This document shows, in pieces, positions 19,059-41,176 of a DNA stretch of 64,000 bases. Both the position numbers and the translations under genes were made by a program. Each line of letters opens with the position of its first letter. The stretch's first letter is position 1. The notes below the pieces were generated by a model that saw only the letters and a program-made list of their open reading frames with translations, was not told the origin of the DNA and did no database searches. This DNA comes from Hyalangium minutum (GTDB lineage Bacteria > Myxococcota > Myxococcia > Myxococcales > Myxococcaceae): assembly GCF_000737315.1 (NCBI RefSeq), contig NZ_JMCB01000003.1, positions 868,001-932,000 of the forward strand. The letters run 5' to 3'.

Positions 19059-19107
19059 CGCTCCCTCCGTTACCGGCTGGGGCGCTCACTGTAGCCTGCC
19101 CACCGTG

Positions 19108-19145: not shown

Positions 19146-19164
19146 CGTGACTCCAGGCCGCAGT

Positions 19165-19458: not shown

Positions 19459-19680
19459 CCGAGATTCCTTTGAGGGGGGAACGCACCCTGCGTTCTCCGG
19501 CTGCAGGTCTGTGCGGCGGAACGGTCCAAAGCACACGGCGAGCCAACGCTTGGGCGCGAGTGAAAACAAGCACTTGCGAAACAGGGCCTCCCCGTGGACC
19601 GTCCACGCCCGCGGACGGTCCGTCCACGCTGGGAGACGGGTCAGCCGTGGCCGCCTGGGGTTCTCCCCGGCTGTCCGGCC

Positions 19681-19706
19681 TTCAGGGCTCACCGGTGAGC
19701 CCTGAA
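19681..19706. repeat. Perfect 26-bp palindrome
   Basis: TTCAGGGCTCACCGGTGAGCCCTGAA equals its own reverse complement and contains the Imm52 stop codon. Confidence 0.95.
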
Positions 19707-20434: not shown

Positions 20435-20448
20435 CGGACAGCGGCTCC

Positions 20449-21894: not shown

Positions 21895-21929
21895 GGGCAG
21901 CCTCCGGAGCATGGCTCCCGCGCCGGGAG

Positions 21930-22321
21930 CCCCCCGAGATTAAAGCGCGCGAGGAGATGTGCCGCGAGCACTGGAACCGGTGCATCGAGCATGGTGGCGA
22001 ATACGAGAGGCGCGGGCAATACGGCCAGACCCTCTGCCGTTCCTGCTGGCAAACCTGCAAAGCGAATGGGTTCTGGCCCGATCAGGTCAACGACATTCCG
22101 TGTTTGGGGGGCTAGGCGTGGGTCGCTCTCGGAGAGCATGGTGGCGCGCTGTCGCGGAGGCGCGCGAGTGGCTCACGCTGGACCTGAGCTACGCGGACGC
22201 GCCCTTCGAGGTGATCGTCGCCGTCCCCAAGGATCTCGAGCGGCAACAAATGCTCGACAGCATTGAGCACGCCCGGCGCGTAGCCCTTCGATGTCTTCCA
22301 CACAGGGAGACGGGCCCCTAG
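21930..22321 (+). pseudogene. Remnant: Cys-rich toxin-like C-terminal fragment plus a short downstream ORF
   Basis: CREHWNRCIE...LCRSCWQTCKANGFWPDQVNDIPCLGG* (stop 22115) has no start of its own; a GTG ORF follows at 22118-22321. Confidence 0.55.
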
Positions 22322-23307
22322 CCCACTGTTCCCCGCCGCTGATCGCGCCGGTATGTGCCAGGAGCCGTCCCTCCCCAACGCTTGAAGGCCCGGTTGAACG
22401 AGGCCTCGCTGCTGTACCCCACGTACTCGGCCACCTCGCTCAGCGGCACGTGGCTCTCGCGCAGCAGCTGCGCCGCCTTCGTCATTCTCCACCGCGCCAG
22501 GTACTCCAGGGGCGGCTCTCCCACGAGCGCCGTGAAGCGCGCGGCGAACCCGGACCTCGAGAGCGCCACTGCCGCCGCCAGGCTCTCCACCGTCCACGGC
22601 TCCGCGGACCGCTCGTGAAGCAGCGCGAGCGCCTTGCCAATCTGCGGATCCACCAGCGCCCGCAGCCCGTGCTCCTCGCACTTCCCTCCCGCCACGTGCG
22701 CCCGAAGCGCCTGCACCAACAAGATGTCCGCCAGCCGGCTCATGATCACCGTCGCTCCCGGGCTGTTCGACGCGCTCTCCGCCAGCAGCAACTGTACGGT
22801 CGGCGCCAGCGAGCCCGCCGTTACCGGATCATCCGCGGTGATGTGGATGAGCGGCGGCAGTGCATTGAACAGCGGCGTCTGAGGCTCGACCCCAAACCGG
22901 AACGAGGCCGCTACCAAGGACGTGCGCGCCCCCTCCCCACCCAGCCGTATCGGCCCCACCCCCCGGGCCCGCTTGCACTCGCCCTGCCCCAGCACATGCA
23001 ACGGGCTCCCCGCCGTATCGCGCAGCGTGTGCCCCCCGCCATGCGGAAGCAGCGCTAAGTCCCCGGCCGACAGGACGACGCCTCCCTCGCGCCCCTCGAC
23101 CTCCAAGCGAGCACCACCGCGCGCAATCAGAACAATGTGAGCCCCCGGGCGCTGCGGGAACTGAATTCCCCACGGCGCATACAGCTCGAAGCGGCCATAC
23201 ATGTGCGTGGACAGCCGCATCGTGTCCAGCACCTCCGCCAGTACATCCGCAGGCTGCCCGTCCGGCTCGGCTGGACGATCGGTCAATTCTTTTGGACTGG
23301 GTGACAT
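22318..23307 (-). CDS. AraC-family regulator (cupin plus HTH)
   Basis: DVLAEVLDTMRL, WTVESLAAAVALSRSGFAARF and VGYSSEASFNRAFKR. Confidence 0.92.
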   Translation of the reverse strand: MSPSPKELTDRPAEPDGQPADVLAEVLDTMRLSTHMYGRFELYAPWGIQFPQRPGAHIVLIARGGARLEVEGREGGVVLSAGDLALLPHGGGHTLRDTAGSPLHVLGQGECKRARGVGPIRLGGEGARTSLVAASFRFGVEPQTPLFNALPPLIHITADDPVTAGSLAPTVQLLLAESASNSPGATVIMSRLADILLVQALRAHVAGGKCEEHGLRALVDPQIGKALALLHERSAEPWTVESLAAAVALSRSGFAARFTALVGEPPLEYLARWRMTKAAQLLRESHVPLSEVAEYVGYSSEASFNRAFKRWGGTAPGTYRRDQRRGTVG

Positions 23308-23341
23308 GGCACGTCCATATCGGCCTGGGTATTTCCTGGCC

Positions 23342-24430
23342 ATGACAAACATCTCGCACCTGTTCACTCCGTACCGACTGGGCCGCTTCGAGCTAAAGAA
23401 CCGCCTGGTCATGGCCCCCATGACTCGCAGCCGCGCCTCGGCGGAGGGCAACGTCCCCAGCCCGCTCGCCCCGGACTACTACGCACAGCGCGCCTCGGCC
23501 GGGCTCCTCATCACCGAGGCGACCCAGGTCAGCCCTCAAGGCGTAGGCTACATCCGCACGCCCGGCATGCACTCGCCCGAGCAAGTGGCCGGCTGGCGCA
23601 AGGTGACGGACGCCGTCCACGCGGCGGGCAGCCTCATCTTCGCCCAGCTTTGGCATGTCGGGCGCGTCTCGCACCCTGACTTCCATGACGGCCGACTGCC
23701 AGTGGCGCCCTCGGCCATCGGTTACGGGGGGTTTGCCTTCACGTTCCAAGGCCGCAAGCCCACGGTGACGCCGCGAGCGCTCGAGACCGAGGAGCTCCCC
23801 GGCGTCGTCGAGCAATTCCGGAGCGCGGCCCAGAACGCCCTGGAAGCGGGCTTCGATGGCGTGGAGCTGCACGGCAGCAACGGCTACCTGCTGGATCAGT
23901 TCCTGCGCGATAGCTCCAACCAGCGCACGGACGCGTACGGAGGCAGCATCGAGAACCGGGCGCGCTTCCCGCTGGAGGTGACCCGGGCCGTGGCGAGCGT
24001 CTGGGGCGCGGAGCGAGTGGGCTACCGGCTCTCGCCTCAGCCGTACGCGTACGGAGGCATGTGGGACTCGACCCCGGCAGACACCTTCAGCTACATGGCC
24101 CGCGAGCTGAGCCGGCTGGGGCTGGGCTACCTGCACGTGACGGAGCACGTATCGGGCAAGGAAGTGCCGAGCCCGGAGCAGCGCATCACCCCGCTCTTGC
24201 GCAAGGCGTTCCACGGCACCTTCATCGTCAACGGCAGCTATGACGCCCAGGCGGGCGAGGCGGCGCTCTCCCGGGGTGAGGCGGATCTGGTGGCTTACGG
24301 CGTGCCGTTCCTCGCCAACCCGGATCTGCCGGAGCGCTTCCGCCAGCAGGCCGTGCTCAACCCTCCGGACACCTCCACCTTCTTCACCGGCGAGGAGAAG
24401 GGCTACACGGACTATCCGGCGCTGCACTGA
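23342..24430 (+). CDS. Old Yellow Enzyme / alkene reductase (NemA-like)
   Basis: KNRLVMAPMTRSRA, QLWHVGRVSH and FDGVELHGSNGYLLDQFL. Confidence 0.93.
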   Translation: MTNISHLFTPYRLGRFELKNRLVMAPMTRSRASAEGNVPSPLAPDYYAQRASAGLLITEATQVSPQGVGYIRTPGMHSPEQVAGWRKVTDAVHAAGSLIFAQLWHVGRVSHPDFHDGRLPVAPSAIGYGGFAFTFQGRKPTVTPRALETEELPGVVEQFRSAAQNALEAGFDGVELHGSNGYLLDQFLRDSSNQRTDAYGGSIENRARFPLEVTRAVASVWGAERVGYRLSPQPYAYGGMWDSTPADTFSYMARELSRLGLGYLHVTEHVSGKEVPSPEQRITPLLRKAFHGTFIVNGSYDAQAGEAALSRGEADLVAYGVPFLANPDLPERFRQQAVLNPPDTSTFFTGEEKGYTDYPALH

Positions 24431-24478
24431 GCCGGACGTGGCATCCTGCGGCAGCGAAGCAGTGCAAGGAGCGGCCCC

Positions 24479-25375
24479 ATGTCGACGGACCCGGAGTTGG
24501 AACTGGTGATGCTGGCCCGGAGCGCGGAGCTCCCCGGAGGGCTGCACGTGCGCCGGGCCATTCCACAGGCCCAGCGGCGGATGGTGGGGCCGTTCGTCTT
24601 CGTGGATCAGATGGGACCGGCGGAGTACCCGGCGGACCGGGAGGTGACGATCCTCGCCCACCCGCACATCGGGCTGTCGACGGTGACCTACCTCTTCGAG
24701 GGCGAGGGCGTGCACCGGGACAGCCTCGGGACGGAGCAGAAGATCCTCCCGGGTGAGGTGAACTGGATGACGGCGGGCCAGGGGATCGTCCACTCGGAGC
24801 GGACGCGGGCGGGCGGCTCGGGGCGGATGTTCGGCATCCAGACGTGGGTGGCGCTCCCGAAGCACCTGGAGGAGTGCGCGCCCACCTTCGAGCATTATGA
24901 CGCGAGCGCCGTGCCACTCTTGGAGGAAGGCGGCGTCACCACCCGGCTGATCGCGGGCTCGCTGTTCGGGGCCCGCTCCCAGGTGAGGACCTCCTCCCCG
25001 CTCTTCTACGCCGAGGTCCTGTTCGAGGCGGGGGCGGTGCTGCAGCTGCGCCCCGAGTACGACGAGCGGGCCGCCTTCGTGGTGGAGGGCGCGGTGACGC
25101 TGACCGAGACGACGCTGCGGGCCGGCGAGATCGCCTTCTTCCACCGGGGCACGGAGGTGCTGCTGCGCGCCGAGGAGCCCACCCGGCTGCTGCTGCTGGG
25201 AGGCGAGCCGCTGGAGGGCCCGCGCTACATCTCGTGGAACTTCGTCTCCAGCTCGAAGGATCGGCTCAAGCAGGCGTCCAGCGACTGGCGCCACCAGCGC
25301 TTCGCGCGCATCCCCGGGGAGACGCAGTACATCCCGCTCCCCGAGGACGGCGATACACCGGTCAACTATCCCTGA
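24479..25375 (+). CDS. Pirin family protein
   Basis: VGPFVFVDQMG, HPHIGLSTVTYLFEG, WMTAGQGIVHSE and GIQTWVALP. Confidence 0.93.
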   Translation: MSTDPELELVMLARSAELPGGLHVRRAIPQAQRRMVGPFVFVDQMGPAEYPADREVTILAHPHIGLSTVTYLFEGEGVHRDSLGTEQKILPGEVNWMTAGQGIVHSERTRAGGSGRMFGIQTWVALPKHLEECAPTFEHYDASAVPLLEEGGVTTRLIAGSLFGARSQVRTSSPLFYAEVLFEAGAVLQLRPEYDERAAFVVEGAVTLTETTLRAGEIAFFHRGTEVLLRAEEPTRLLLLGGEPLEGPRYISWNFVSSSKDRLKQASSDWRHQRFARIPGETQYIPLPEDGDTPVNYP

Positions 25376-28300
25376 CGGCGCCCACGGAGAGCCCATGCCA
25401 GAGCCATCAAGGCCCATGAAAGAGGAAGGACAGGGGCGGTAGCGCAACTCCAGCCGTAATGGCTCATGGGGATGATGAATGCGTACTCAGCGGAGGGTTG
25501 GCTGGTATTGCTGGCTTCATCCGTGGCAGTGGCCACGACCAGGTGGCGGCCTCCTGCCAGCGCCGTGTCGACGTTGACACTCCAGTTTCCCGCCTCATCC
25601 GCTGGGACCGTCCCCACCCAAAGACCATCCAGCCACACATTCACAGTGCTCTTTGCCTCCGCCGTCCCCCCCAGAGTGGGCTTCGGGGTGTTGACGATGG
25701 AGCTTGGCAATCCCACCTCGGGTGCATCGGGCTTCTGGGTGTCGACGGTAAAGGGATGAGCCGTAGAGAGAGCACTGATATTGCCCACGGCATCGGTGGC
25801 CATCGCTGTAACCAGATGCGGTCCATCGAACAACTCCGCCCCCGGAGTGAAGCGCCAACTCCCCGTGGCATCTGTCATGGCGATGCCTGCATCCGTCTCA
25901 TCCAGCCGCACCGTCACCATGCTTCCCACCTCCGCTCTCCCTTCAATGAGAGGTATCCGTGTGTTGACGAGTGCTCCAGGCGCCGTCACTTCGGGCGCCT
26001 CGGGTGCCAGAGAGTCGATCGTGAAGGTACGGACCCTGGTAGAACTGACATTGTTGGCTTTATCGGTGGCAGTCACCTCGGCGACGTGGAGTCCCTCGAT
26101 CAACGGAGTCTCAAGGGTCACGCTCCAGAATCCCGTCGCGTCTGCCTGAATGGTCCAAACCTCTTGCCCATCCATCCGTACCGCCACGGTGCTATTGGCC
26201 TCCGCCGTGCCAGCAATGGTGGGCTTCAGGGTATTGATAAGCTCCCCAGGAGAACTCACCTCAGGTGCGTCTGGCCGCACGGTGTCGACTGTGACGAGGT
26301 GGGTTTTGGAGAGGCTGACATTGCCCACTTCGTCCGTGGCGGTGAGCTCGGTTTGGAGGTGTCCATCGGAGAGAGCCGTGGAAGGAATGAAGCTCCAGGC
26401 TCCATCTTCATCGGTGCTGGCTGTCCCCAGCACGGTGCTTCCCAGCCACAACGTCACCGTGCTCCGGGCCTCCGCCAGCCCCCTGTAAGTCGGCCGGTTG
26501 TCGTTGATGGTGGAGCCGTTGTTCGGTGTGAGCACCACTGGGGACGATGGCGGCACGGTGTCCACGATGAACGTGTAGGCGATGGATTCGGCGCTGGTAT
26601 TGCCCCCGGCATCCGTCGCTTGCACCTTCACCGTGTGGACGCCGTCCGCCAGCACCGCTGGCTGCGTGCAGTTCCACTCTCCCGAGGCATTGGCCACCCG
26701 AGTCCCCACGGCCACGCCATCCACCATCACCTTGACGGTGCCGCCCGCCTCCACGGTCCCTTGATAGATCGGCCGATTGTCTTTGATGGTGGAGCCGTTG
26801 GCCGGCTCGAGCACCTGCGGGGCTCCGGGTGGCTGCGTGTCCACTGTGAACGTGTAGGGCATGGACGCAGCGCTGGTATTGCCCGCGGAATCTGTCGCGT
26901 ACGCTTTCACCGTGTGCTCCCCCTCCGACAGCACCGTGGGCTGCGTGAAGTTCCATATCCCCGAGCCATTGACCCCCGCCGTCCCCAACACTGTGGTCCC
27001 CAGCCACAACGTCACCGTGCTCCGGGCCTCCGCCAGCCCCCTGTAAGTCGGCCGGTTGTCGTTGATGGTGGAGCCGTTGTTCGGTGTGAGCACCACTGGG
27101 GACGATGGCGGCACGGTGTCCACGATGAACGTGTAGGCGATGGATTCGGCGCTGGTATTGCCCCCGGCATCCGTCGCTTGCACCTTCACCGTGTGGACGC
27201 CGTCCGCCAGCGCCGCTGGCTGCGTGCAACTCCACTCTCCCGAAGCATTGGCCACCCGATTCCCCACGGCCACGCCATCCACCATCACCCTGACGGTGCT
27301 GCCCGCCTCCACGGTCCCTTGATAGATCGGCCGATTGTCTTTGATGGTGGAGCCGTTGGCCGGCTCGAGCACCTGCGGGGCTCCGGGTGGCTGCGTGTCC
27401 ACTGTGAATGCATAGGGAGTGGACTCGAAGCTGATGGTGCCCGCGGAGTCTGTCGCGTACGCTTTCACCGTGTGAATCCCATCCGTCAGCACCGTGGGCT
27501 GCGTGAAATTCCACTCTCCAGAGCCATTGACCCCCGCAGTCCCTCGGGCTGTGCCATCCACCACCACCGTGACGGTGCTGCCCAATTCTGCCGTGCCGCT
27601 GTAGAACGGACGGTTGTTGTTGAGCGTGGAGCCGTTGATGGGCGTGAGCACTGTCGGGCTCGTTGGGTCAATCACCTCCATGCTGGAGAGGGCGCCCCCG
27701 GAGCCAAAGCCCCCGGTCACCAACACCTTGCCAGAGTCCAATAACGTCGCCGTGTGGTATACGCGTGCGGCGCTCAAAGGGTTCGTGGTGCTCCAGTTCC
27801 CTGTGGTCGGGTCGTACAGTTCCATGCGGTCGAAGTAGGCACTGGAGCCCTCGCCACCGATGACCAGGACCTTGCCGGAGGCCAACAACGTCGCTGTGTG
27901 ATCAGCACGCGCCAAGGACAGGGAGTTCGTAGTGCTCCGGTTCCCCGTGTCGGGATCGTACAGCTCTGCATGGGCGAGATAGCCGCTGGTGCCATGGCCC
28001 CCAATGACCAGCACCCTGCCGGAGGCCAACAACGTCGCCGTGTGGGCCATGCGAGCCTTGGCCATCTCACCCGCGCTGCTCCACGTTCCCGAGGCGGGGT
28101 CGTACAGTTCCATGCTGGTGAGAACACCCCTGGAGCTATCGCCCCCGATGACCAGCACCTTGCCGGAGGACAGCAGCGTCGCCGTGTGAGTATCACGGGC
28201 CGTCATCATTCTTCCCGTGGTGCTCCAGGTCCCCGTGTCGGGGTCATACAGCTCCGCAGTGGCCAGATAGCCGCTGGGACCGTACCCCCCGGTGACTAGA

Positions 28301-29823
28301 ACCTTGCCGGAGGCCAACAGCGTTGCCGTGTGAGCATCACGGGCCATGGTCATGGAGCCTGTGGTGCTCCACGTTCCTGTGGCTGGATCGTATAACTCCG
28401 AGGTGGCTAGAGAGCCGGCCACGCTAAATCCCCCAGTGACCAGCACCTTGCCGGAGGCCAACAGCGTCGCCCTGTGGGTGCTACGGGCTGTGCTCATGGA
28501 GCCCATGGGGCTCCAGGCCCCCATGGCCGGGTCATACACCTCCGTGCTGGCGATATTGCCACTGGGGCCAAAACCCCCGGTGACCAGCACCTTGCCGGAG
28601 GCCAACAGCGTCGCCTCGTGGTACTGGCGGCCCGCGATCAGAGAGCCCTTGGTGCTCCAGGTTCCCATGGCCGGGTCGTACACCTCCGCGCTGGAGAGAT
28701 ATCCGCTGAGACCATAGCCAGCCATGACCAACACCTTGCCGGAGGGCAGCAGCGTCGCCGTGTGGCGATAACGAGCCGTTCCCATGACGCCCGTCGTGCT
28801 CCAGGTACCCGTGGCCGGATCGTACACCTCCGCTCTGGAAAGCGGGCCCGCCTGGCCATAGCCGCCGGCAACCAGCACCTTGCCGGAGGCCAACACCTCT
28901 GCTGTGTGGGTTTCACGGGCTGTAGCCATAACGCCCGCAGTGGTCCACCCCCCTGTGGCCGGGTCGTACACCTCCGCGCTGGAGAGGAGGCCCCCAGGAC
29001 CATAGCCACCGGTCACCAAGACCTTGCCAGAGGCCAACACCACTGCTGTATGGGCTTTACGGGCCATCGCCATGACGCCTGCGGTGCGCCAAGTCCCCGT
29101 GGCTGGGTCGTACACCTCCGCGCCAGCGAGCGAGCCGTCTAGATCTTCGCCTCCGGTGACCAGCACCTTGCCGGAGGCCAACAGCGTCGCCGTGTGGGCG
29201 ACACGGACTGTGGCCATGGAGCCCGTGGAGTTCCAAGTCCCCGTGGCCGGGTCGTACAGCTCTGCGCTGGCAAGGGGACCCTCTGAGTCTTCGCCTCCGG
29301 TCACCAGCACTTGGCCGGAGGCCAACAGCGTCGCCGTGGGGGCCTCGCGGGCCATGGCCATGGAACCCGTGGAGCTCCAAATCCCCGTGGCCGGGTCGTA
29401 CACCTCCGCGCTGGCAAGGGAGCCATTGGGGCCGTACCCTCCGGTGACCAACACCTTGCCGGAGTGCAACAACGTTGCTGTGTGGGTCCTGCGAGCTGTG
29501 GCCATGGAACCCGTGGAGATCCAAGTCCCCATGGCCGGATCGTACAACTCCGCGCTGGCAAGAGAACCGCTTCGGGCACGCCCCCCGGTGACCAACACCT
29601 TGCCGGAAGACAATAACGTCGCCGTGTGAAAATCGCGGGCCGTAGCCAGAGTGCTCACGGCACGACTGCCCCCCGCGAGAGCCTGAAGGGCCTGGGTCTC
29701 GAGTCTTTGGGGATGCTGCTCTTGACCCTCACTCTCCACCTGGCCGCACGCCAAACACAGCAGTGCGGAACTGATGATCAGCCTGACGATCACTCTCAAC
29801 TTGATTCTGAGGGCGGATGGCAT
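25366..29823 (-). CDS. Large surface protein: 14 Kelch repeats, 8 bacterial Ig-like domains, MYXO-CTERM-like tail
   Basis: 48-aa repeats HTATLLASGKVLVTGG...YDPATGTW counted 14 times; Ig-like units ...ATDxAGNxS; N-terminal LCLAC lipobox; C-terminal YGWSCATAP..WALMALAWALRGRR. Confidence 0.88.
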   Translation of the reverse strand: MPSALRIKLRVIVRLIISSALLCLACGQVESEGQEQHPQRLETQALQALAGGSRAVSTLATARDFHTATLLSSGKVLVTGGRARSGSLASAELYDPAMGTWISTGSMATARRTHTATLLHSGKVLVTGGYGPNGSLASAEVYDPATGIWSSTGSMAMAREAPTATLLASGQVLVTGGEDSEGPLASAELYDPATGTWNSTGSMATVRVAHTATLLASGKVLVTGGEDLDGSLAGAEVYDPATGTWRTAGVMAMARKAHTAVVLASGKVLVTGGYGPGGLLSSAEVYDPATGGWTTAGVMATARETHTAEVLASGKVLVAGGYGQAGPLSRAEVYDPATGTWSTTGVMGTARYRHTATLLPSGKVLVMAGYGLSGYLSSAEVYDPAMGTWSTKGSLIAGRQYHEATLLASGKVLVTGGFGPSGNIASTEVYDPAMGAWSPMGSMSTARSTHRATLLASGKVLVTGGFSVAGSLATSELYDPATGTWSTTGSMTMARDAHTATLLASGKVLVTGGYGPSGYLATAELYDPDTGTWSTTGRMMTARDTHTATLLSSGKVLVIGGDSSRGVLTSMELYDPASGTWSSAGEMAKARMAHTATLLASGRVLVIGGHGTSGYLAHAELYDPDTGNRSTTNSLSLARADHTATLLASGKVLVIGGEGSSAYFDRMELYDPTTGNWSTTNPLSAARVYHTATLLDSGKVLVTGGFGSGGALSSMEVIDPTSPTVLTPINGSTLNNNRPFYSGTAELGSTVTVVVDGTARGTAGVNGSGEWNFTQPTVLTDGIHTVKAYATDSAGTISFESTPYAFTVDTQPPGAPQVLEPANGSTIKDNRPIYQGTVEAGSTVRVMVDGVAVGNRVANASGEWSCTQPAALADGVHTVKVQATDAGGNTSAESIAYTFIVDTVPPSSPVVLTPNNGSTINDNRPTYRGLAEARSTVTLWLGTTVLGTAGVNGSGIWNFTQPTVLSEGEHTVKAYATDSAGNTSAASMPYTFTVDTQPPGAPQVLEPANGSTIKDNRPIYQGTVEAGGTVKVMVDGVAVGTRVANASGEWNCTQPAVLADGVHTVKVQATDAGGNTSAESIAYTFIVDTVPPSSPVVLTPNNGSTINDNRPTYRGLAEARSTVTLWLGSTVLGTASTDEDGAWSFIPSTALSDGHLQTELTATDEVGNVSLSKTHLVTVDTVRPDAPEVSSPGELINTLKPTIAGTAEANSTVAVRMDGQEVWTIQADATGFWSVTLETPLIEGLHVAEVTATDKANNVSSTRVRTFTIDSLAPEAPEVTAPGALVNTRIPLIEGRAEVGSMVTVRLDETDAGIAMTDATGSWRFTPGAELFDGPHLVTAMATDAVGNISALSTAHPFTVDTQKPDAPEVGLPSSIVNTPKPTLGGTAEAKSTVNVWLDGLWVGTVPADEAGNWSVNVDTALAGGRHLVVATATDEASNTSQPSAEYAFIIPMSHYGWSCATAPVLPLSWALMALAWALRGRRQG
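26441..27556. repeat. 558-bp intragenic tandem duplication (two Ig-like domains)
   Basis: 26441-26850 is nearly identical to 26999-27408, and the 558-bp register continues with more mismatches. Confidence 0.9.
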
Positions 29824-30094
29824 GCCTGCCTCCTTACCTATTGCTTCTCTTCTCTCCCCAAGAGCGTTTGCAGCTCTTGAGAACAGCACGGGCTGGGAGT
29901 GCTACTGCACCCGGTGAAGCCCGAAAGGGTGAGCCCCAAAAGAGAAGCGTGGCGGAAGAGCGCCGCTGAACGGCGCGTACGCCAACAGGCAATGCAAGTA
30001 ACGGACCCAGGAGCGAATACTCCTGGGGGAGGCACCGGCGAGGGTTAGGAATGAGAGCAATGCCTGGCCCCGGAATGGCCCAGACTTACGTCAA

Positions 30095-30128
30095 CTGACG
30101 CGTCAACGCTTGCATCTGACGCGTCAAC
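30095..30128. promoter_or_regulatory. Two copies of CTGACGCGTCAAC (palindromic core TGACGCGTCA), 21 bp apart
   Basis: Seen at 30095-30107 and 30116-30128 in the intergenic region upstream of the Kelch gene. Confidence 0.55.
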
Positions 30129-30199
30129 ATGGGGAGACGGCCTGAGCGACAGTTCTCGCCCAGGCCATCCGCCTGCTCGTCTGCTCAGCAAGGAGCAGC

Positions 30200-30706
30200 T
30201 CACCGGCCGCCGAGGAAGTCCGCCTTGCCCACGTCCACACCGTTGTGACGCAGAATGGCGTAGGCCGTGGAGAGGTGGAAATAGAAGTTGGGCAGCGCGA
30301 AGTGGAGCAGATATTCCTGGCCCTTGAAGTGAAGCTCACCTGCCCTCGTCTTGAGGGTGACGGAGCGCTCCTCGCTGCCATCGATCTGCGCCGCAGTCAC
30401 TGTCTTCAGAAAGGCGAGGGTCTTCTCGATGCGCTCCTTCAGCTCGGGGAACGTGGACTCGGTGTCTGCGAAGCTGGGCGCCTCGATCCCCGACAGACGG
30501 GCCGCACATCCCTTTGCAGAATCGGTCGCGGTCTGAATTTGGAAGGAGAAGGGAAGCATGTCGGGCGCCAAGCGGTCCCGGATCAGCACCGCCGGATCAA
30601 TCTTCTTCGCCTCGGCATGCGCCGCAGCCTTGTCGAGGATCTTCGAGAGATTGCCCAGCATGCGGATGAAAACGGGGATCGACGCCTGGTACATGGACAG
30701 GGACAT
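30200..30706 (-). CDS. DUF1993 family protein
   Basis: RLAPDMLPFSFQIQ, YLLHFALPNFYFH and AYAILRHNGVDVGKADFLG. Confidence 0.9.
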   Translation of the reverse strand: MSLSMYQASIPVFIRMLGNLSKILDKAAAHAEAKKIDPAVLIRDRLAPDMLPFSFQIQTATDSAKGCAARLSGIEAPSFADTESTFPELKERIEKTLAFLKTVTAAQIDGSEERSVTLKTRAGELHFKGQEYLLHFALPNFYFHLSTAYAILRHNGVDVGKADFLGGR

Positions 30707-30748
30707 GGTGCTGGCTCCAAAAAATGGGGGGGAAAAGCGGGCCGGAAT

Positions 30749-30997
30749 CTAACGGGAGCGCCGCACGCGGACCACCTTACCGCGCCGATCATCCACCGCC
30801 AGCTCCACCCACCGGCCCCGAGGCATCCCAAAGCGCACCAGCCACACCATGACATCCCGAACGGGAGAGGGCTGCTCCGGCTCTCCCTCGCCCAGTTCGA
30901 TGTACTGCAGCTCGGCCGACTCCACCCGGGCGTCCGGGGGTACTTCCTTCTCCTCTCGGGCGCTCTCGGCGATGGCCACGGCCTGCTCCCGCATCAT
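30749..30997 (-). CDS. Small PepSY-like protein (82 aa)
   Basis: MMREQAVAIAE...VESAEL...VWLVRF...ELAVDDRRGKVV; start overlaps the upstream stop (ATGATGA). Confidence 0.7.
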   Translation of the reverse strand: MMREQAVAIAESAREEKEVPPDARVESAELQYIELGEGEPEQPSPVRDVMVWLVRFGMPRGRWVELAVDDRRGKVVRVRRSR

Positions 30998-31476
30998 CGC
31001 GCGCCCTCCTCCACGGGCAGGATGGAGATGACGGCGCGCCGCGCGGGGTTGATGCACACGCGCAGCCCGTCCGAGGGCTCCTTCCCTTCGAAGCGAAGCT
31101 CCAGGCTCCCCTTCTCTCCCTGGCGGGACTCCACCAGCGTCAGCCCGGGCCGCAGCAGCCCGCTCGTGCGAGCGATGGCCAGCGCCTCCGCGTCCGTCAG
31201 CGGCTCCCAGCGGCACTTCTCCCACTTGTCGTGGTCCACGTAGCCCACGACCCGATCGTCCGCGTCGAGCACCACCTCGAACTGGCCATACCGCCGCCAG
31301 AGCACCATCGAGCGATCCGCCACGTAGCGCAGCTCGATAGGATCCCACGTCAGCGCCGCATCGTCCGGTACGGGGATGGGCTCAGCGACGAAGTCCCCGT
31401 TCATGTGCTCCTGGGCGAACTTCAAGCAGTCTTCGATCGCCTTCTTCTGCAGCGTGTCGAGATCGAACAAGGCCAT
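30994..31476 (-). CDS. Hypothetical protein with PepSY-like C-terminal half; candidate immunity
   Basis: Starts 15 bp after the vgrG stop; LTDAEALAIA...LRVCINPARRAVISI. Confidence 0.7.
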   Translation of the reverse strand: MALFDLDTLQKKAIEDCLKFAQEHMNGDFVAEPIPVPDDAALTWDPIELRYVADRSMVLWRRYGQFEVVLDADDRVVGYVDHDKWEKCRWEPLTDAEALAIARTSGLLRPGLTLVESRQGEKGSLELRFEGKEPSDGLRVCINPARRAVISILPVEEGAR

Positions 31477-31491: not shown

Positions 31492-34400
31492 CTACTTCAA
31501 CATCGAGACGACGCTGGTGACGAACCCGGCGATGGCCCGCCCCAGCGCAGTGAAGGGCTGGAGGAACGGATGATCGATGGACCCGCCGCCCTCGCCGAAC
31601 AGCACCGGGCGCATGCTGTGATAGTAGGGCGCGCCCGTGTCGTAGAAGACCGCTGGAATCTTCGCGGGGTTGAAGTGATACGAGTCCCTCCACTTCGTAT
31701 AGAAGTTGCGCGCCATGGCCCGCGCGTCGTTGTCGGGGATGTAGCAGCGGAAGGCCAGGTAGTTGCGAGTGCCCCGGTTGACGAAGGCATTGCCCAGGCT
31801 CCGCTCCCAGCCCGCCACGCACGTGTCCACGTAGACGAGGTAGCGCGGCACGCTCGGCACAGCGGTCTTGTTGCGGACGTCAGCCTCTCCGAAGGTGTTG
31901 CCGGGCTGGTTGCTTGACGCCACGGCAACGATGACACTGCGCCAGTTCCCACCAGGCTGCGAGTGCGGCGGGTTGTTGTTCTTCGGATCCTGCAGGCTGG
32001 CACCCGTACCCGGATCCTGCACGTCGCCGTGGCTGGCGTGGTGATAGCTGTAAGTGTTGCGCAGCAACGAACCCCAGTTCGCTACCGGCACCGTGGCCCC
32101 ACTGAGCGCAAGCGTCCCCGCCTTGTGGTGCGCCTTGGCGCGGATCAAACCGGCGATCTCGTTCATCTCCGCGCCCGTGGTGAGCCCACCGCCCGGGCCT
32201 GTATCCGCCACCGAGTCACTGACCACCATGTGCCAGTACTCGACCTGGAGCGTCTTCGCCTTGTCCTTGCCCAGATCATACGGGCTGGAGCCCGTGAGCC
32301 CCTTGTGGGACAGCTTCACGCGGAAGAAGAAGTGCGGGCAGTCGTAGGGATCCCACGGCAGGTGCTTGGCCTCGAAGGTCCACACCGGCGGCTGTCCCGT
32401 CTTCTTGTCCACCACCTTGTTGCCCTGCACCACCAGATCCGTAAGCGCCCCCACTCGCGCGCCCGTGAGGCAGTGGTGGATGGAGATGAGCGCCCGGGCA
32501 CCCGCCGGGACGTTCTCCGTCTCCACCTGCGCGACGATCTTTGCGTCCGCGGGCACAGCGCCGCCCGGGGGCGCACCGCTGTTGTGGTTGGGCACGGCCT
32601 TGTTCTTGTCCCAGGTGAGGCTCTTGAGGACTGGAACTGGATCCTTCTTGGGCGCCTTCGGGGCCTTGCCCTTCTTGCCTTTGAGGCTCTTCTGCGAGCC
32701 CGCGGAGATCCTCTTGACCTCCGAGCCCTTGAACTTCAGCTGGCTCCCGTCGACGGTGATGGAGCTGCCCGTCCACTGGATGTTGCCGGACTGCTCGACG
32801 GTCAGCACCACCTTGCCGCCTACCGACACGGTGAGCTTGTCCGCCTTGAGCTCGATCTCCTGGGCCATCCACGCGAACCCGCCCGTGATGGCGTGGAGCG
32901 TGTCCCCCTTCACTGTCTCGGTGAGGTCCTTGCCGATCTCCACCTTGAGCTCTTCTGGGATCGCCGTTTTGAACTCGCCGAAGATCTTCGAAGAGCGATC
33001 GCCGTCGACCTTCTCCTCGCGGTCCAGCTGGACCACCTCGATGAACGAGCCGCCCACCTGCTCGGCCTTCAGTCCGATCACGGCCTCGTTGAACCCCAAC
33101 CCCACCGCCACCGAGTACGCCCCGCCCACCGTCAGCGCCTTGGCCGCCGCCACGTTCTCCATGGAGGCCATGGCCACATCGAGCTTCAGCACCTGGGCCA
33201 CCGTGATGCTCTGCGCGTTGGCCACGTCCTCGTGGTGATCCCCCGAGATGTCCGTGGTGCGGTTGCCCATCACCGTGAGCGACTGGTTGCCCTGGATCTT
33301 CCGGACGTCCTCCTGCTGCACCGCCAGGATCTGGTTGCCCTGCACGCTCTGCGTCCGGTTCCCCGCGACCGTCAGATCCTCGAAACCTCCGATGCGCTGG
33401 GTCTTGTCGTTCTCGGCCTGGATCTCCCAGTCCTTCTGGCCGTGCAGGGCAATGAACTCCGTCCCCGCCGCGTCCTCGAAGCGCAGCTCGTTGAAGCCTC
33501 CACCGCCCGGGCTGGAGCTGGAGCGCAGCGTGCTCTTCGTCTTCTCGTCTGGCAGCGGCACCGGCGGCGGGTTCTCGCCGTTGTAGACCGAGCCCACCAC
33601 CAGCGGACGATCCGGATCGCCCTCCAGGAACCGGACGATGACCTCCTGCCCGATGCGCGGCAGGTACAGCGCGCCCCACCCGGCCCCCGCCCACGCCTGG
33701 CTCACGCGGATCCAGCATGAGCTCCGGTCGTCGCCCGGCGCCTCGCGGTCCCAGTGGAAGCGGACCTTGATGCGGCCGTGCTCGTCGGTGTGGATCTCCT
33801 CGCCCGAGGGCCCCACGACGATCGCCGTCTGCGCTCCGGCAATCACAGGCGCCGGGGTGAGCCGAGGCGGACGGAAAGGCACGGCCGCCGGGAGCGCATG
33901 GAACCGGCTCCGGTAGGCGTGGTGCCCGCCCGAGTGTTCCACCGCGACCAACAGGTAGTCCCCCTCGAAGGCGGCATCCGGATGCTCCGTCAGCGTGAAG
34001 GTGCAGCCAGGCACCATGCGCACACTCGAGCTCTCGCCCTCGCAGCGCTCGGCATCCTGCCGGTGCTCCTCCAGCCGCACCTTCGACAGGTTCTTTCCAG
34101 CGCCCGGATCCTCGTACTTGCCCGGATAGTCGTAGACCTCCAGCTCCGTGCCGACGTTGGACGCCTCCTTGTTCGCCGTCAGATCCAGCGACGGGCGCAC
34201 GAAGTCGAAGTCCCGCAGCACCACCGCGCCCGGCTGCACGCGGGCCACGCGCTCCAGGCCCAGCACGTGCTCCTCGCTGACCTCGGTGCCCAGAGCCCCT
34301 CGGAACGGCAGGCGCGCCTCCCCCGGAATGGGCGTGTGCGCGCCCGTGCCATCTCCGAGCATCAGCGTGTGCGCGTCCTCGGTGTGCTCGAAGAAGAAGA

Positions 34401-34914
34401 AGATGCCCTCGGACTCGAGCAGCCGGGACACGAAGTCGAAGTCCGACTCGCGGTACTGCACGCAGAAGTCCCGGGGCGCGTAGCTGCCATCCAGGCTCCC
34501 GCCGTGCGAGAGCCCTGCCTCTTCGAGCACTTGCTGGACGATCTCCGGCACGCTCTTCTGCTGGAAGATGCGGCTGCGGCGCACGTGGCGGAGCTTCCAG
34601 AACTCGGGGACGAGCAGCGCCCGGTAGCGCATGAGCCCCTGCCGCTCGCCCAGCGACTCCACCCGGCCGATGATCCCGTGGACGAAGCGCGAGGCCCCAT
34701 TCACCACATCATGCAAGGCCAGCACGCCCTTCTGCCCGAGCATCTCCCGAGGCTGGATGGCCGCCTGCCCCACGGCCGCCAGCTCCACGGTGAAGGAGAA
34801 CGCGCGCGACAGCTCCTCCCGCCCGGAGAAGCCGAGCACGGTGAGCTCCTCGGAGGTGTAGGGCCCCGCGCGGAACTCGAAGGCGATGCGGCGGGTCTCT
34901 TGTCCTGACGGCAC
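31492..34914 (-). CDS. vgrG: Evolved VgrG with a ~400-aa C-terminal extension (caspase/CHAT-like)
   Basis: VgrG core (CVQYRESDFDFVSRLLE, HTDEHGRIKVRFHWDR, LPRIGQEV) with beta-helix repeats; extension carries YHHASHG and LVYVDTCVAG. Confidence 0.93.
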   Translation of the reverse strand: MPSGQETRRIAFEFRAGPYTSEELTVLGFSGREELSRAFSFTVELAAVGQAAIQPREMLGQKGVLALHDVVNGASRFVHGIIGRVESLGERQGLMRYRALLVPEFWKLRHVRRSRIFQQKSVPEIVQQVLEEAGLSHGGSLDGSYAPRDFCVQYRESDFDFVSRLLESEGIFFFFEHTEDAHTLMLGDGTGAHTPIPGEARLPFRGALGTEVSEEHVLGLERVARVQPGAVVLRDFDFVRPSLDLTANKEASNVGTELEVYDYPGKYEDPGAGKNLSKVRLEEHRQDAERCEGESSSVRMVPGCTFTLTEHPDAAFEGDYLLVAVEHSGGHHAYRSRFHALPAAVPFRPPRLTPAPVIAGAQTAIVVGPSGEEIHTDEHGRIKVRFHWDREAPGDDRSSCWIRVSQAWAGAGWGALYLPRIGQEVIVRFLEGDPDRPLVVGSVYNGENPPPVPLPDEKTKSTLRSSSSPGGGGFNELRFEDAAGTEFIALHGQKDWEIQAENDKTQRIGGFEDLTVAGNRTQSVQGNQILAVQQEDVRKIQGNQSLTVMGNRTTDISGDHHEDVANAQSITVAQVLKLDVAMASMENVAAAKALTVGGAYSVAVGLGFNEAVIGLKAEQVGGSFIEVVQLDREEKVDGDRSSKIFGEFKTAIPEELKVEIGKDLTETVKGDTLHAITGGFAWMAQEIELKADKLTVSVGGKVVLTVEQSGNIQWTGSSITVDGSQLKFKGSEVKRISAGSQKSLKGKKGKAPKAPKKDPVPVLKSLTWDKNKAVPNHNSGAPPGGAVPADAKIVAQVETENVPAGARALISIHHCLTGARVGALTDLVVQGNKVVDKKTGQPPVWTFEAKHLPWDPYDCPHFFFRVKLSHKGLTGSSPYDLGKDKAKTLQVEYWHMVVSDSVADTGPGGGLTTGAEMNEIAGLIRAKAHHKAGTLALSGATVPVANWGSLLRNTYSYHHASHGDVQDPGTGASLQDPKNNNPPHSQPGGNWRSVIVAVASSNQPGNTFGEADVRNKTAVPSVPRYLVYVDTCVAGWERSLGNAFVNRGTRNYLAFRCYIPDNDARAMARNFYTKWRDSYHFNPAKIPAVFYDTGAPYYHSMRPVLFGEGGGSIDHPFLQPFTALGRAIAGFVTSVVSMLK

Positions 34915-34972: not shown

Positions 34973-37300
34973 ATGGACGGGACCCGAAGCAGGCATCTAT
35001 CGTCCTTGCCGAGCGCACAAGGGAGCATTCCGGTGAGACCAGCCAGTGTCCTGACCGCCAGCGAGCCTGAGTTCGAGTTCGCCGCAGGCCCCTTCACACA
35101 GGGAGAGCTCTCCGTCATCGAGTTCGAGGCCCGCGAGGGCCTGTCCACCCCGTACCGGGTGGAGCTCGTCTTCACCGCCGCATCCGACATGGTCGTCGAG
35201 GCCGCCGATCTGCTCGGCCAGCCCGCCGCCCTGGTGGTGCGCCAGGGGGACGACATCCGCTACCTGCACGGTCTCGTCTCCGAGCTGAGCCGATGGAACA
35301 TGGGAGGCGGGCCACAGCGCAACCGCTACCGCGCGGTGCTCGAGCCCCGGTTCCACCAGCTGCGCCATACCCGCCGCAGCCGAATCTTCCAGCAAAAGAG
35401 CATCCCCGAGATCATCCAGGCGGTGCTGGACGCGGGAAAGGTGAAGTACACCCTGGACCTCCAGGGCTCCTACTCGCCACGGGACTACTGCGTGCAGTAC
35501 CGCGAGTCCGACTTCGACTTCGTCTCGCGGCTGATGGAGGAGATGGGCATCTTCTATTTCTTCCGCCACGAACAGGGTGAGCACGAGCTGGTATTGGGGG
35601 ATTCCCCCAGTGTGCATACGCCCATCCTCGGCGAGCCGGCGCTGCCCTTCCGGGATCCGGCGGGCATGGCGGCGACGGAAGAGTGCGTCTACGACATGGC
35701 AGGGAAGCTGGAAGTGGTCCCCGGGGCAGTGGCGCTGCGGGACTTCGACTTCGTGCGGCCCTCGCTGGACATGACGGTGGACAGCCAGGACTCGAAGGGC
35801 GACACGGCGCTCGAGGTGTACGACTACCCGGGCAAATACGAGGATCCCGGCCCAGGTCAGGATGTGGCGAAGATCCGCCTGGAGGAGCTGCGGGCTCCCG
35901 GGCAGGTGGCGTGGGGCCAGTGCCAGAGCCGGCGGATGATGCCGGGACACAAGTTCGAGCTGACGGGCCACGCGGAGCCCGAGCTGAACCGCGAGTACCT
36001 GCTGCTATCGGTGATGCACGAGGGTTATCAACCTGAGGTGCTCCTCTTCGAGCAGTCGAACGGAAGGCTCACGGGGCGCAAGCCGTACCGCAGCACCTTC
36101 CAGTGCATGCCGTCCGAGGTCCCCTACCGCCCGCCTCGGCGGACATCGCGTCCGGTGATTCCCGGGCCGCAGACGGCGATCGTCGTGGGGCCCTCGGGCG
36201 AGGAGATCCACACCGACGAGCACGGCCGGGTGAAGGTGAAGTTCCACTGGGACCGCGAGGCGCCGGGCGACGACCGGAGCTCGTGCTGGATCCGCGTGAG
36301 TCAGGCGTGGGCGGGCCCGGGCTGGGGTGCGCTGTACCTGCCGCGCATCGGGCAGGAGGTGGTGGTGGACTTCCTGGAGGGCGATCCGGATCGGCCCCTC
36401 ATCACCGGGCGCGTGTACAACGGGCACAACCCTCCCCCCACGGATCTGCCCGGGAAGCGGACGCAGAGCACGCTGCGCTCGGACTCCAGCCCCTCCAGTG
36501 GCGGCTTCAATGAGCTGCGCTTCGAGGACGCGGCCGGTGAGGAGCAGATCTACCTCCATGCGCAGAAGGACATGGAGATCGGCATCGAGAACGACAAGAA
36601 CCAGTCGATCGGCGGGAACGAGTCGCTCACGGTGGCGAAGGATCGGCGCCGGGAGATCAGCGGCAACCAGTCGTTGAAGGTGCAGGGAAACGACGACTCG
36701 ACGGTGGGCGGCAACCAGACGGTGGAGGTGCGCTCGAACCGGACGACGACGGTGGCGGGCAACCACACGGAGACGGTGGGCGGCGCGCAGAACATCGAGG
36801 TGGGCGGGACTCACACGCTGTCGGTGGCGCTGGCCTCGGCGGAGACGATCGGCCTGGCCAAGGCGCTCAATGTGGGCGGGGCCTACGCCATCAGCGTGGG
36901 CGCGGCGATGAACGTGGCGGTGGCGGGGGTGAAGGCCGAGGAGGTGGGCGGCTCCAAGACCGAGCTGGTGGGCTCGCAGAAGACGGAGAAGATCGCCGGC
37001 TCGAAGACGCTCACGGTGGGCAAGGAGCTGACGGAGACGGTGGGCGAGTCGCGCACGCTCGAGGTGGGCAAGGACATGACGCTCACGGTGGGCGGCATGC
37101 TCCAGCAAGTGACGAAGAAGAACCACAAGCTGTCGGCCAAGGAGATCAGCCTGGTGGCCGAGGACACCTTCACCATCAAGGTGGGCTCGGCCTCGCTCAC
37201 GTTCAAGAAGAGCGGGGACATCGTCATCAAGGGCGCCAAGGTCGAGGTGACCGCCAGCGGCGACGTCATCATCAAGGGCAGCAAGATCGCCGACAACTGA
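34973..37300 (+). CDS. vgrG: VgrG (no effector extension)
   Basis: Full VgrG core ending in the short DUF2345-like tail IKGAKVEVTASGDVIIKGSKIADN; the start may be GTG near 35032. Confidence 0.95.
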   Translation: MDGTRSRHLSSLPSAQGSIPVRPASVLTASEPEFEFAAGPFTQGELSVIEFEAREGLSTPYRVELVFTAASDMVVEAADLLGQPAALVVRQGDDIRYLHGLVSELSRWNMGGGPQRNRYRAVLEPRFHQLRHTRRSRIFQQKSIPEIIQAVLDAGKVKYTLDLQGSYSPRDYCVQYRESDFDFVSRLMEEMGIFYFFRHEQGEHELVLGDSPSVHTPILGEPALPFRDPAGMAATEECVYDMAGKLEVVPGAVALRDFDFVRPSLDMTVDSQDSKGDTALEVYDYPGKYEDPGPGQDVAKIRLEELRAPGQVAWGQCQSRRMMPGHKFELTGHAEPELNREYLLLSVMHEGYQPEVLLFEQSNGRLTGRKPYRSTFQCMPSEVPYRPPRRTSRPVIPGPQTAIVVGPSGEEIHTDEHGRVKVKFHWDREAPGDDRSSCWIRVSQAWAGPGWGALYLPRIGQEVVVDFLEGDPDRPLITGRVYNGHNPPPTDLPGKRTQSTLRSDSSPSSGGFNELRFEDAAGEEQIYLHAQKDMEIGIENDKNQSIGGNESLTVAKDRRREISGNQSLKVQGNDDSTVGGNQTVEVRSNRTTTVAGNHTETVGGAQNIEVGGTHTLSVALASAETIGLAKALNVGGAYAISVGAAMNVAVAGVKAEEVGGSKTELVGSQKTEKIAGSKTLTVGKELTETVGESRTLEVGKDMTLTVGGMLQQVTKKNHKLSAKEISLVAEDTFTIKVGSASLTFKKSGDIVIKGAKVEVTASGDVIIKGSKIADN

Positions 37301-40034: not shown

Positions 40035-41171
40035 ATGATGGGATGGGTGAAGACCATAGGGCTGGCGTCCTCGCTGGGCCCGTTGATCCCGGCGTGCGCG
40101 GCGTTCCGCGCGGGCGTCTCCCGGCCCTCCGCAGCTCCGGACGCCGAGGTCTTCTTCCAGGGCGACGAGGAGCCCGCCACCGTGGCCGTCCATGTGCTCC
40201 CAGCCGCCACGTTTGGCTTCTCCGGAGTGGGCCGGCTGATCGCCCTGCTCACCGAGGCACTCGCGGACCTCGCGACGCGGGCGGACCTGAGCGCGCTGGA
40301 TGCACAGGCGGGGCTCTACGTCGCGCTGCCTGATCCCGAAGCGCGCGGCTTCACCCCCAGCAAGGAGCCCGAGGACGAGAACGCGGACACCGTCGAGGAG
40401 CGCGTGGCAGCGCTCGGAGCGCGCGTGGTGGAGGGAACCTTCGCGGCGCTGCGACACCCATGGCGAGGCCCTCCCGCGCGCCTCTTCCACGGAGGCAACG
40501 CGGCGTTCGGCATGGCCCTGGCGGCCGCGGCAGAGGATCTGAAGAACCGCCGGGTGAGCACCGCCCTGGTGTGCGCCGTGGACAGCCTGGCCTCACCCGA
40601 GACCGTGCGCTTCCTCAACGACGAAGGGCTGCTCAAGACCGAGGACCACCCCACGGGCCTCATCCCCGGCGAGGCCGCCGTGGCCCTCCTCTTGAGCCCC
40701 ACCTCCGCGGCCCGAGCAGAGGCCCAGGGCACGCCGGTCTTCCTCCGAAGCGTGGCGCTGGACACGGATCCGCACCCGGTCGGGGCGGATCGTCCCACCG
40801 ATGCTCAGCCGCTCGCGGGCTGCCTCCTCACCGCGCTGGGGCCTCTCTCGCCCCAGGCCCGCGTGCCCCTGCTCATCTCCGACCACGACGGCCAGCACTG
40901 GCGCGCGTACGAGTGGGGCTTGCTCCAACTCCAGCTCGCCAGCCGCGAGCGCTCCCTGACGGATGCTCCCGCGTGGCTGCCCGCCCTGAGCTTTGGCCAC
41001 ACGGGAGTGGCCTCGGGAGGGCTCGGCGCCGCCGTGGCCTTCCGGGCCTTCCAGCGAGGCTACGCCCCTGCTCCTTCTATTCTCGTGCTCTCGTCCTCGG
41101 ACACGGGCGAGCGCGCAGCCCTCCACTTCTCCTCCGAGGAGCCCTCGGCTCCCGGCCGTTCACGGCGGTAA
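40035..41171 (+). CDS. Ketoacyl-synthase-like T6SS effector adaptor (PRK06147-type)
   Basis: ALVCAVDSL, GLIPGEAAVALLL, SDHDGQHWRAYEWG and SFGHTGVASG; context with DUF2169, DUF4150 and TIGR02270. Confidence 0.8.
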   Translation: MMGWVKTIGLASSLGPLIPACAAFRAGVSRPSAAPDAEVFFQGDEEPATVAVHVLPAATFGFSGVGRLIALLTEALADLATRADLSALDAQAGLYVALPDPEARGFTPSKEPEDENADTVEERVAALGARVVEGTFAALRHPWRGPPARLFHGGNAAFGMALAAAAEDLKNRRVSTALVCAVDSLASPETVRFLNDEGLLKTEDHPTGLIPGEAAVALLLSPTSAARAEAQGTPVFLRSVALDTDPHPVGADRPTDAQPLAGCLLTALGPLSPQARVPLLISDHDGQHWRAYEWGLLQLQLASRERSLTDAPAWLPALSFGHTGVASGGLGAAVAFRAFQRGYAPAPSILVLSSSDTGERAALHFSSEEPSAPGRSRR

Positions 41172-41176
41172 TCCCC

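Follow-up and report, generated by a model that had tools for sequence, protein, structure and literature searches.

A three-gene PepSY-like partner set linked to the CHAT/caspase-like domain of an evolved VgrG in Hyalangium minutum: candidate chaperone-inhibitor of a type VI secretion toxin

Genes at the locus

We analysed a stretch of 64,000 nucleotides from Hyalangium minutum (contig NZ_JMCB01000003.1, positions 868,001 to 932,000; hereafter the window), focusing on two small genes, A and B, that directly follow an evolved vgrG gene of a type VI secretion system (T6SS). A sequence-only reading of the window had proposed that both are PepSY-like, inhibitor-type immunity genes for a protease carried by this VgrG. 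The present analysis suggests that A and B are parts of a larger set, which includes two further genes, C and D, located 11.7 kb away. The features concerned are listed below, with protein lengths in amino acids (aa).

31492-34914, minus strand: evolved vgrG, 1140 aa, comprising a VgrG/gp5 spike (about residues 1-740), a Lys/Pro-rich linker and a C-terminal toxin domain
31495-32673, minus strand: CHAT/caspase-like toxin domain, VgrG residues 748-1140 (the last 393 aa)
30994-31476, minus strand: gene A, 160 aa, ATG start; predicted cytoplasmic, two alpha+beta domains; proposed piece 1 of a split A-C-B unit
30749-30997, minus strand: gene B, 82 aa, ATG start; a single alpha-beta4 PepSY-like domain; proposed piece 3 of the split A-C-B unit
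18519-19058, minus strand: gene C, 179 aa; predicted cytoplasmic; proposed piece 2 of the split unit, 11.7 kb from B
18040-18528, minus strand: gene D, 162 aa; predicted exported lipoprotein with a ...LVFSC lipobox
19059-30748, no strand assigned: block between A-B and C-D, about 11.7 kb; absent in Hyalangium versicolor (locus L006)

The two open reading frames (ORFs) at 30749-31476 have the coordinates given to them by the sequence-only reading, and the 15-bp gap that it noted is exact: the vgrG stop codon occupies 31492-31494 and the A start codon 31474-31476. This spacer contains AGGAAG, 5 nt 5' of the A ATG. The stop codon of A (TGA, 30994-30996) and the start codon of B (ATG, 30995-30997) share 4 bp (ATGA). 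The junction had been described as an 'ATGATGA' overlap; the 4-bp stop/start overlap stands, and the letters are in fact an ATGA overlap followed by a second ATG (GATGATGC). Upstream of the B start codon, GGAGGAGGG is found. As had been predicted, neither A nor B contains a hydrophobic segment of the signal-peptide kind.

Database searches returned 29 homologs of A (47-90% identity) and 35 homologs of B. The homologs that are named all belong to Myxococcota, and no Pfam annotation is attached to either family. The stop/start overlap or abutment of A and B is seen again in most related loci, and the layout of adjacent, co-oriented, tightly coupled partner genes is common to at least 20 of them. 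Because the homologs are conserved and synteny is kept, A and B are real genes; chance ORFs in high-GC DNA were ruled out on these grounds. In one related locus (L005, 7347-7592), the B gene is present and overlaps the end of A, and was left uncalled in the source annotation.

C and D of the window were located by tblastn on the same strand as A and B. C shows 70% identity (tblastn) to the Myxococcus stipitatus gene that lies directly after B and, like A and B, has no hydrophobic segment. The end of C overlaps with D, and immediately after D come tssJ, tssK, tssL and tssM (Pfam T6SS-SciN, VasE, DotU and IcmF). A signal peptide, usually with a lipobox, is present in nearly all D members; that of the window is MAMTSRVLGALSALALVFSC. 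Thus, of the two-gene partner first proposed, A and B hold up as real, conserved genes; the wider four-gene unit had been missed, with C and D 11.7 kb away in the window and A, C and B fused elsewhere.

In H. versicolor (L006), vgrG with its C-terminal domain is followed without a break by A, B, C, D, tssJ and tssK, and the toxin domain is 90% identical to that of the window. This contiguous order leads us to infer, from a single comparison, that about 11.7 kb was inserted between B and C of the window. The orthologous vgrG-toxin gene of L006 (4716-8182) is contained in two ORFs of 528 and 609 aa, owing either to a frameshift (pseudogene) or to an assembly error.

The C-terminal domain of VgrG

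The spike region of VgrG was readily recognised (Pfam Phage_GPD at 1.6e-94, also Gp5_trimer_C and Phage_base_V; NCBIfam TssI/VgrG at 6e-186). The C-terminal domain is more divergent: it scores 13.4 bits against Pfam CHAT (PF12770; E 0.05), for a gathering cut-off of 24 bits. Among 37 family members, 27 match Pfam CHAT at E<=0.1 (the best at 5.9e-9); three distant homologs came with a precomputed PF12770 annotation. His215-Gly216 and Cys285 in domain numbering, corresponding to His962, Gly963 and Cys1032 of VgrG, are invariant in the 37-sequence alignment and sit in the motifs '...HHASHG...' (His-Gly) and '...DTCVAG...' (Cys). The putative catalytic His962-Gly963 is encoded at 32026-32031 and Cys1032 at 31819-31821. 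Judged from these alignments, the invariant His-Gly and Cys form a caspase-type dyad pattern, and the domain is assigned to a divergent CHAT/caspase-like family, which is in line with the earlier description of the VgrG C-terminus as a CHAT protease. A profile of the domain gave only noise against all PDB sequences (E>=0.26).

Outside VgrG, the domain occurs in stand-alone proteins of about 400 aa, or behind PAAR-like, peptidoglycan-binding or immunoglobulin (Ig)-like N-termini; one homolog carries a PG_binding_1 domain. In VgrG and in every homolog it is the C-terminal-most domain, with no segment after it to release. This position bears on the possibility that the domain is not a toxin but a processing or releasing peptidase, with A-D as its substrates, cargo or regulators. 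Most Tox-Caspase versions are indeed releasing peptidases (Zhang et al. 2012, PMC3482391). However, nothing lies downstream of the present domain to be released, C-terminal versions are given a toxin role in the same paper, and A, B, C and D belong to no recognisable enzymatic or toxin family. We therefore regard a releasing role as improbable.

Linkage of the partner genes to the toxin domain

Four gene families, corresponding to A, B, C and D, recurred downstream of toxin-domain homologs in other phyla. Hidden Markov models (HMMs) of these families were run on the six-frame ORFs of every fetched locus. The toxin-seeded set contained 15 loci, namely 14 fetched loci and the window. In all 15, A then B lie immediately downstream of the toxin domain, the contig of L008 ending inside A. 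At least 13 of the 14 fetched loci have C and D as well, arranged A-B-C-D or A-B-D-C; the C HMM detects C in 14 loci and the D HMM detects D in at least 14. The four families are homogeneous in size: 154-163 aa for A-like proteins, 81-99 for B-like, 176-187 for C-like and 120-180 for D-like, the latter being duplicated in some loci. A second scan, seeded with A on metagenome contigs, yielded seven loci, and the toxin domain is next to A in all six that have flanking sequence. The sequence-only reading had made its proposal depend on a link between the homologs of A and B and VgrG-CHAT genes; both sets of loci bear this link out.

The toxin-domain loci span at least 5 phyla (Myxococcota, Gammaproteobacteria, Verrucomicrobiota, Bacteroidota and Planctomycetota). 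They come from Hyalangium, Myxococcus and other Myxococcaceae, a Gammaproteobacteria metagenome-assembled genome (MAG), a Pseudomonadales MAG, Limisphaerales, Flavobacteriaceae, Tepidisphaera, Phycisphaerales and several 'delta/Proteobacteria' MAGs.

Delivery of the domain differs between loci. It is fused to VgrG in about half of them (the window, L001, L006, L007, L013-L015 and L017), forms a separate gene after vgrG in L004, L009 and L012, has other N-termini in L005, L008, L010 and L016 (one homolog being PAAR-like), and is solitary in L002. Every one of these versions keeps A then B after the toxin domain, and C and D as well where the contig continues. Since the A-B-C-D set follows the toxin domain in both VgrG-fused and non-fused forms, its association is with this domain, not with VgrG.

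Several loci depart from the common arrangement. L019 (2929-7754) has two tandem toxin genes followed by a single A-B-C-D set. Two D genes each are found in L007 (8151-10471) and L015 (8690-9912), and the D gene of M. stipitatus (L001, 9295-10131) is an internal duplication whose start, as annotated, appears to leave out the lipoprotein signal peptide. L023 (2358-4132) is the sole locus with A upstream of the toxin-domain gene; its contig ends inside the toxin gene. In the Pseudomonadales MAG (L002, 4378-4977), an Imm11-family gene lies directly upstream of the stand-alone toxin gene, and there are no T6SS genes within 5 kb.

A-C-B fusion proteins

A search with the B profile, covering 1.84 billion representatives, gave 115 clusters at 50% identity, nearly all of 79-107 aa, together with a few long proteins. 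A, C and B are joined in a single chain in six representative proteins of 413-423 aa, and C and B in one protein of 255 aa. The HMMs match these fusions at E-values of 4e-19 to 4e-7 for A, 1e-28 to 6e-19 for C and 2e-18 to 8e-14 for B. A homolog of the toxin domain is immediately upstream of the fusion gene in 3/3 fusion loci with upstream sequence: a protein of 372 aa in L024 (E 1.2e-54), one of 390 aa in L025 (E 1.3e-49), preceded there by a C-terminal fragment of VgrG, and a more divergent one of 639 aa in L026/L027 (E 2e-6), whose gene has a stop/start overlap with the fusion gene. The fusion loci have an ordinary two-gene toxin/partner layout. The occurrence of A-C-B as one polypeptide indicates that the three genes encode parts of a single functional protein and are not alternative immunity genes.

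This result also bears on the possibility that A and B are independent, redundant immunity paralogs, each sufficient alone. Polymorphic toxin loci commonly contain arrays of immunity genes (Zhang et al. 2012), and a helix plus four-strand domain is predicted in both A and B. However, homology between the two is undetectable (hhalign probability 2%), they form separate orthologous families kept in a fixed order across phyla, and in the fusions they are joined with C in one polypeptide, as parts of one unit. Of the explanations that we weighed, this one appears the least probable. Descent of A, B, C and D as simple paralogs was likewise dropped, because hhalign found no significant similarity between their profiles. 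One weak hint of kinship between A and C was obtained: the A HMM matches the C-like region of one fusion with a domain E-value of 5e-4.

No D was found in the fusion-clade loci L024, L025 and L026. Their composition indicates that the A-C-B unit alone can be the partner of the toxin. It is also the main observation to set against a different division of labour, in which A, B and C would be only cytoplasmic folding, stabilising or loading chaperones (a pro-domain in trans) stripped off at secretion, D the true immunity protein, and the toxin active in the periplasm. Several points are in line with such a scheme: the signal peptide or lipobox of D in nearly all loci, the PG_binding_1 domain of one toxin homolog, the fact that no orphan copies of A, B or C were seen, and the description of PepSY pro-domains and YpeB as chaperones besides inhibitors (PMC13556211). 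On the other hand, besides the three fusion loci with toxin and A-C-B and no D, L022 has no D within 2.2 kb after C. Moreover, A-B-C is kept in loci with a VgrG-fused toxin, which needs no adaptor, and A, B and C match no known T6SS adaptor family in Pfam. We consider this division of labour unlikely, although less so than a releasing peptidase.

Folds of A and B and relation to PepSY

Neither A nor B of the window matches any Pfam or NCBIfam family, even at E<=10, and profiles of A, B, C and D against all PDB sequences gave only noise (E>=0.26). AlphaFold2 models of A and B were built on the family alignments and compared with the PDB using Foldseek. The model of A (predicted local distance difference test, pLDDT, 83) has two alpha+beta domains, the second made of a helix (95-103) and four strands. 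That of B (pLDDT 93) comprises a helix at residues 3-12 and strands at 24-36, 46-57, 63-69 and 75-80. The helix and beta-strand pattern that had been read from the sequence is thus recovered in B and in the C-terminal half of A.

The best Foldseek match of the A model was the C-terminal tandem PepSY array of YpeB (5BOI; E 7e-3, probability 1.0). For B, the best meaningful matches were the propeptide of vibriolysin MCP-02 (3NQZ_A; probability 0.87, TM-score 0.50) and YpmB (2GU3; probability 0.93). PepSY structures among the best meaningful matches were 5BOI, 3NQZ_A, 2GU3 and 9A5Z, with E-values of 7e-3 to 0.9 for what is a small and common fold. The predicted models of A and B thus weakly resemble YpeB, YpmB and the M4 propeptides.

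Sequence comparisons placed B more firmly. Among diverse proteins of each family, Pfam PepSY is matched by 2 of 15 B proteins (best E 0.02) and by none of 16 A proteins; one B relative also matched Imm-NTF2-2 at E 0.037, which is noise level. The fusion relatives gave a clearer signal. In a PepSY scan of the long proteins, 3 of 7 fusions pass the Pfam cut-off of 24 bits (P0176 with 26.7, P0210 with 29.7 and P0204 with 30.9 bits, at profile positions 2-59/60); an eighth protein scanned, P0220, is a 117-aa fragment. The C-terminal segments concerned match the B HMM at 2e-18 to 9e-16. Because these B-like segments exceed the Pfam cut-off, B is assigned through transitive homology to PepSY, as a predicted divergent member. 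The likeness of A to PepSY is one of predicted fold, and no sequence-level link was found for it. The PepSY membership claimed for both genes therefore stands for B, by way of its fusion relatives, and falls short for A.

For C, 2 of 13 members match DUF4901 (YcdB/YcdC) at 2.5e-4, and the C-like segment of the fusions scores 25.4 bits against this YcdB/YcdC repeat family, for a cut-off of 27. Pfam or PDB relatives of D were not found.

Comparison with known systems

Four known systems come close to the present one. The first is the YpeB-SleB pair, in which the PepSY domains of YpeB have been proposed to act as chaperone-inhibitors embracing SleB, akin to protease pro-domains (PMC13556211). The YpeB C-terminal domain 5BOI is the top Foldseek match of the A model; at the sequence level, A and YpeB do not match. 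YpeB is a single membrane-anchored, extracytoplasmic protein and its client a peptidoglycan lytic enzyme of the Bacillus spore cortex, whereas A-B-C is predicted to be cytoplasmic, is encoded by three genes and has a caspase-like protease as its client in a T6SS context.

The second is the FTP-PepSY propeptide of M4 metallopeptidases (thermolysin/vibriolysin). There, an alpha-beta4 PepSY domain is both folding aid and inhibitor of a protease, and one such propeptide, 3NQZ_A, ranks with the best matches of the B model. These propeptides are covalently attached, are cleaved off and inhibit a zinc metallopeptidase outside the cell. In contrast, A, B and C are separate proteins, predicted to be cytoplasmic, whose partner is a cysteine (clan CD-like) peptidase.

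The third comprises the C-terminal 'Tox-Caspase' domains, predicted to be T6SS-delivered toxins with Imm36 or Imm57 as immunity partners (Zhang et al. 2012, PMC3482391). The window shares with them a caspase-like His/Cys peptidase in C-terminal-most position of a T6SS-delivered protein and a dedicated downstream partner. The partner differs, being a PepSY-like multi-domain unit plus a lipoprotein and not Imm36 or Imm57. Indeed, A, B, C, D and their relatives have no match above noise to Imm36, Imm57 or any other Pfam Imm family.

The fourth is an interbacterial cysteine-protease toxin that, by its title and abstract, cleaves the type II topoisomerase subunits GyrB/ParE and is neutralised by a cognate immunity protein (PMC12136450). 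As described there, it resembles the present system, as proposed here, in being an interbacterial cysteine-protease toxin with a cytoplasmic target and cognate immunity; on the same description, it is set apart from a CHAT/caspase-like toxin with a partner in three genes.

T6SS adaptors and chaperones were also considered. No Pfam or NCBIfam match to DUF4123/Tap, DUF1795/Eag or DUF2169 was found among A-D, which are also unlike adaptors in position, since they lie downstream of the effector and are kept where the toxin is fused to VgrG. PADLOC returned nothing for the toxin domain or for any of A-D, and so gave no sign of an anti-phage defence system. In the full-text literature of PMC and bioRxiv, nothing was found that links PepSY to T6SS immunity or describes this module, and searches that paired CHAT with T6SS effectors, or caspase with evolved VgrG, likewise found no description of it. 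Thus, T6SS effector-immunity pairs and caspase-like toxin domains are of known kinds, and a PepSY-like partner is not.

Proposed role of the partner genes

Judged from gene context only, an inhibitor or immunity function is the most likely one for A, B and C. Adjacent and coupled partner genes, their tracking of the toxin domain and the single fused partner in one branch fit a dedicated neutralising partner. Our preferred reading is that a single cytoplasmic, multi-domain PepSY-like protein is encoded here in three parts, A, B and C, and that this protein would be the dedicated chaperone-inhibitor and immunity partner of the toxin domain. We give this reading a probability of roughly 0.55. Physical binding of A-B-C to the toxin, its inhibition, the resulting protection and the compartment in which the toxin acts are all inferred.

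Kinship with PepSY suggests how neutralisation could work, as M4 pro-domains and the YpeB array have been described as chaperone-inhibitors that embrace their enzyme (PMC13556211). The A-C-B unit would assemble on the protease domain and embrace it in the cytoplasm of the producing cell, blocking the active site His962/Cys1032 and perhaps also aiding the folding of the toxin domain. Toxin that arrives from sister cells would be neutralised by this complex too, thereby providing immunity, and lipoprotein D could do the same protective job in the periplasm.

Translational coupling in the window (the 15-bp gap and the 4-bp overlap), with similar overlaps in most loci, argues for this reading. Other points weigh against it. 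To our knowledge, an immunity set of three or four genes is unusual for T6SS. An exported lipoprotein, such as D, is the typical form of immunity against effectors acting in the periplasm; together with the one peptidoglycan-binding toxin homolog, the lipoprotein nature of D means that D could be the true immunity protein and A-B-C only folding or loading factors. Immunity genes often exist as orphans, and no orphan copies of A, B or C were seen in the loci scanned. The PepSY assignment has its own weak points: the window A and B have no Pfam or NCBIfam match, no Foldseek match of either model reached E<=0.001, TM-scores were at most 0.5, and hhalign among the A, B, C and D profiles gave nothing significant (probability <=20%, the best being A versus C). 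Finally, most caspase-like domains in polymorphic toxins are releasing peptidases and not toxins (Zhang et al. 2012, PMC3482391).

More tentatively, and with less confidence than in the role of A-B-C, the locus may represent a previously undescribed, phylum-spanning T6SS module, made of a CHAT/caspase-like protease, a PepSY chaperone-inhibitor that keeps it inactive, in one chain or three genes, and a lipoprotein as a second, periplasmic layer of protection. If so, no PepSY-based immunity system would have preceded it, nor any immunity to a protease effector that is multi-subunit and spans two compartments.

Caspase-like toxin domains have been predicted in T6SS and polymorphic toxins since 2012, and we found no characterised example with a matching immunity mechanism. 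The module offers a defined set for such work: a toxin domain with a His/Cys dyad, three small soluble partners and one lipoprotein. The natural single-chain A-C-B fusions could serve directly for structural studies. If the partners do inhibit, the pro-domain/chaperone-inhibitor role of PepSY, as in M4 peptidases and YpeB-SleB, would also cover cysteine proteases and immunity between bacteria, and the locus would be a clear case of a single immunity protein split into three translationally coupled genes. For annotation, names could be given to about 115 B-family clusters (at 50% identity) and to the corresponding families of A, C and D, all now 'hypothetical'.

The block between B and C and other genes of the window

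The 19059-30748 block shows no visible compositional (GC) anomaly. It contains a DUF1993 gene, a 1507-aa Kelch/Big_13 protein, an AraC/cupin regulator and a Tox-REase-5/Imm52 pair, as well as pirin-like and OYE-like ORFs, judged from their translations. In L017, a close relative from a metagenome, B is likewise not followed by C and D, and the DUF1993 and Kelch genes of the window block are absent there. A further feature lies at its C-proximal end:

19113-19146, minus strand: strong terminator-like hairpin with a 14-pair stem (10 GC pairs) and a T-run, about 55 bp upstream of C

This hairpin marks the end of the inserted block. If it is functional, C-D and tssJKLM would need a promoter of their own. 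A scan for sigma-70 promoters found no sites, which is uninformative for a myxobacterium.

The Tox-REase-5/Imm52 genes form a second toxin-immunity pair, on the minus strand of the block: Tox-REase-5 at 20449-21912 (487 aa, Pfam 3.3e-13) and an overlapping Imm52 at 19682-20452 (Pfam 6e-98). The 1507-aa protein (25366-29889, minus strand) has about 14 Kelch repeats and 8 Big_13 Ig-like domains, with a signal- or anchor-like N-terminus and a hydrophobic C-terminus.

On the other side of the evolved vgrG lies a second, canonical and divergently transcribed vgrG (34973-37300). The small ORFs that follow it have no Pfam match. Downstream of these, a 523-aa ORF (40460-42031, plus strand) carries an AHH (HNH/EndoVII-type) nuclease toxin domain (Pfam 2.8e-7) and is probably another T6SS effector.

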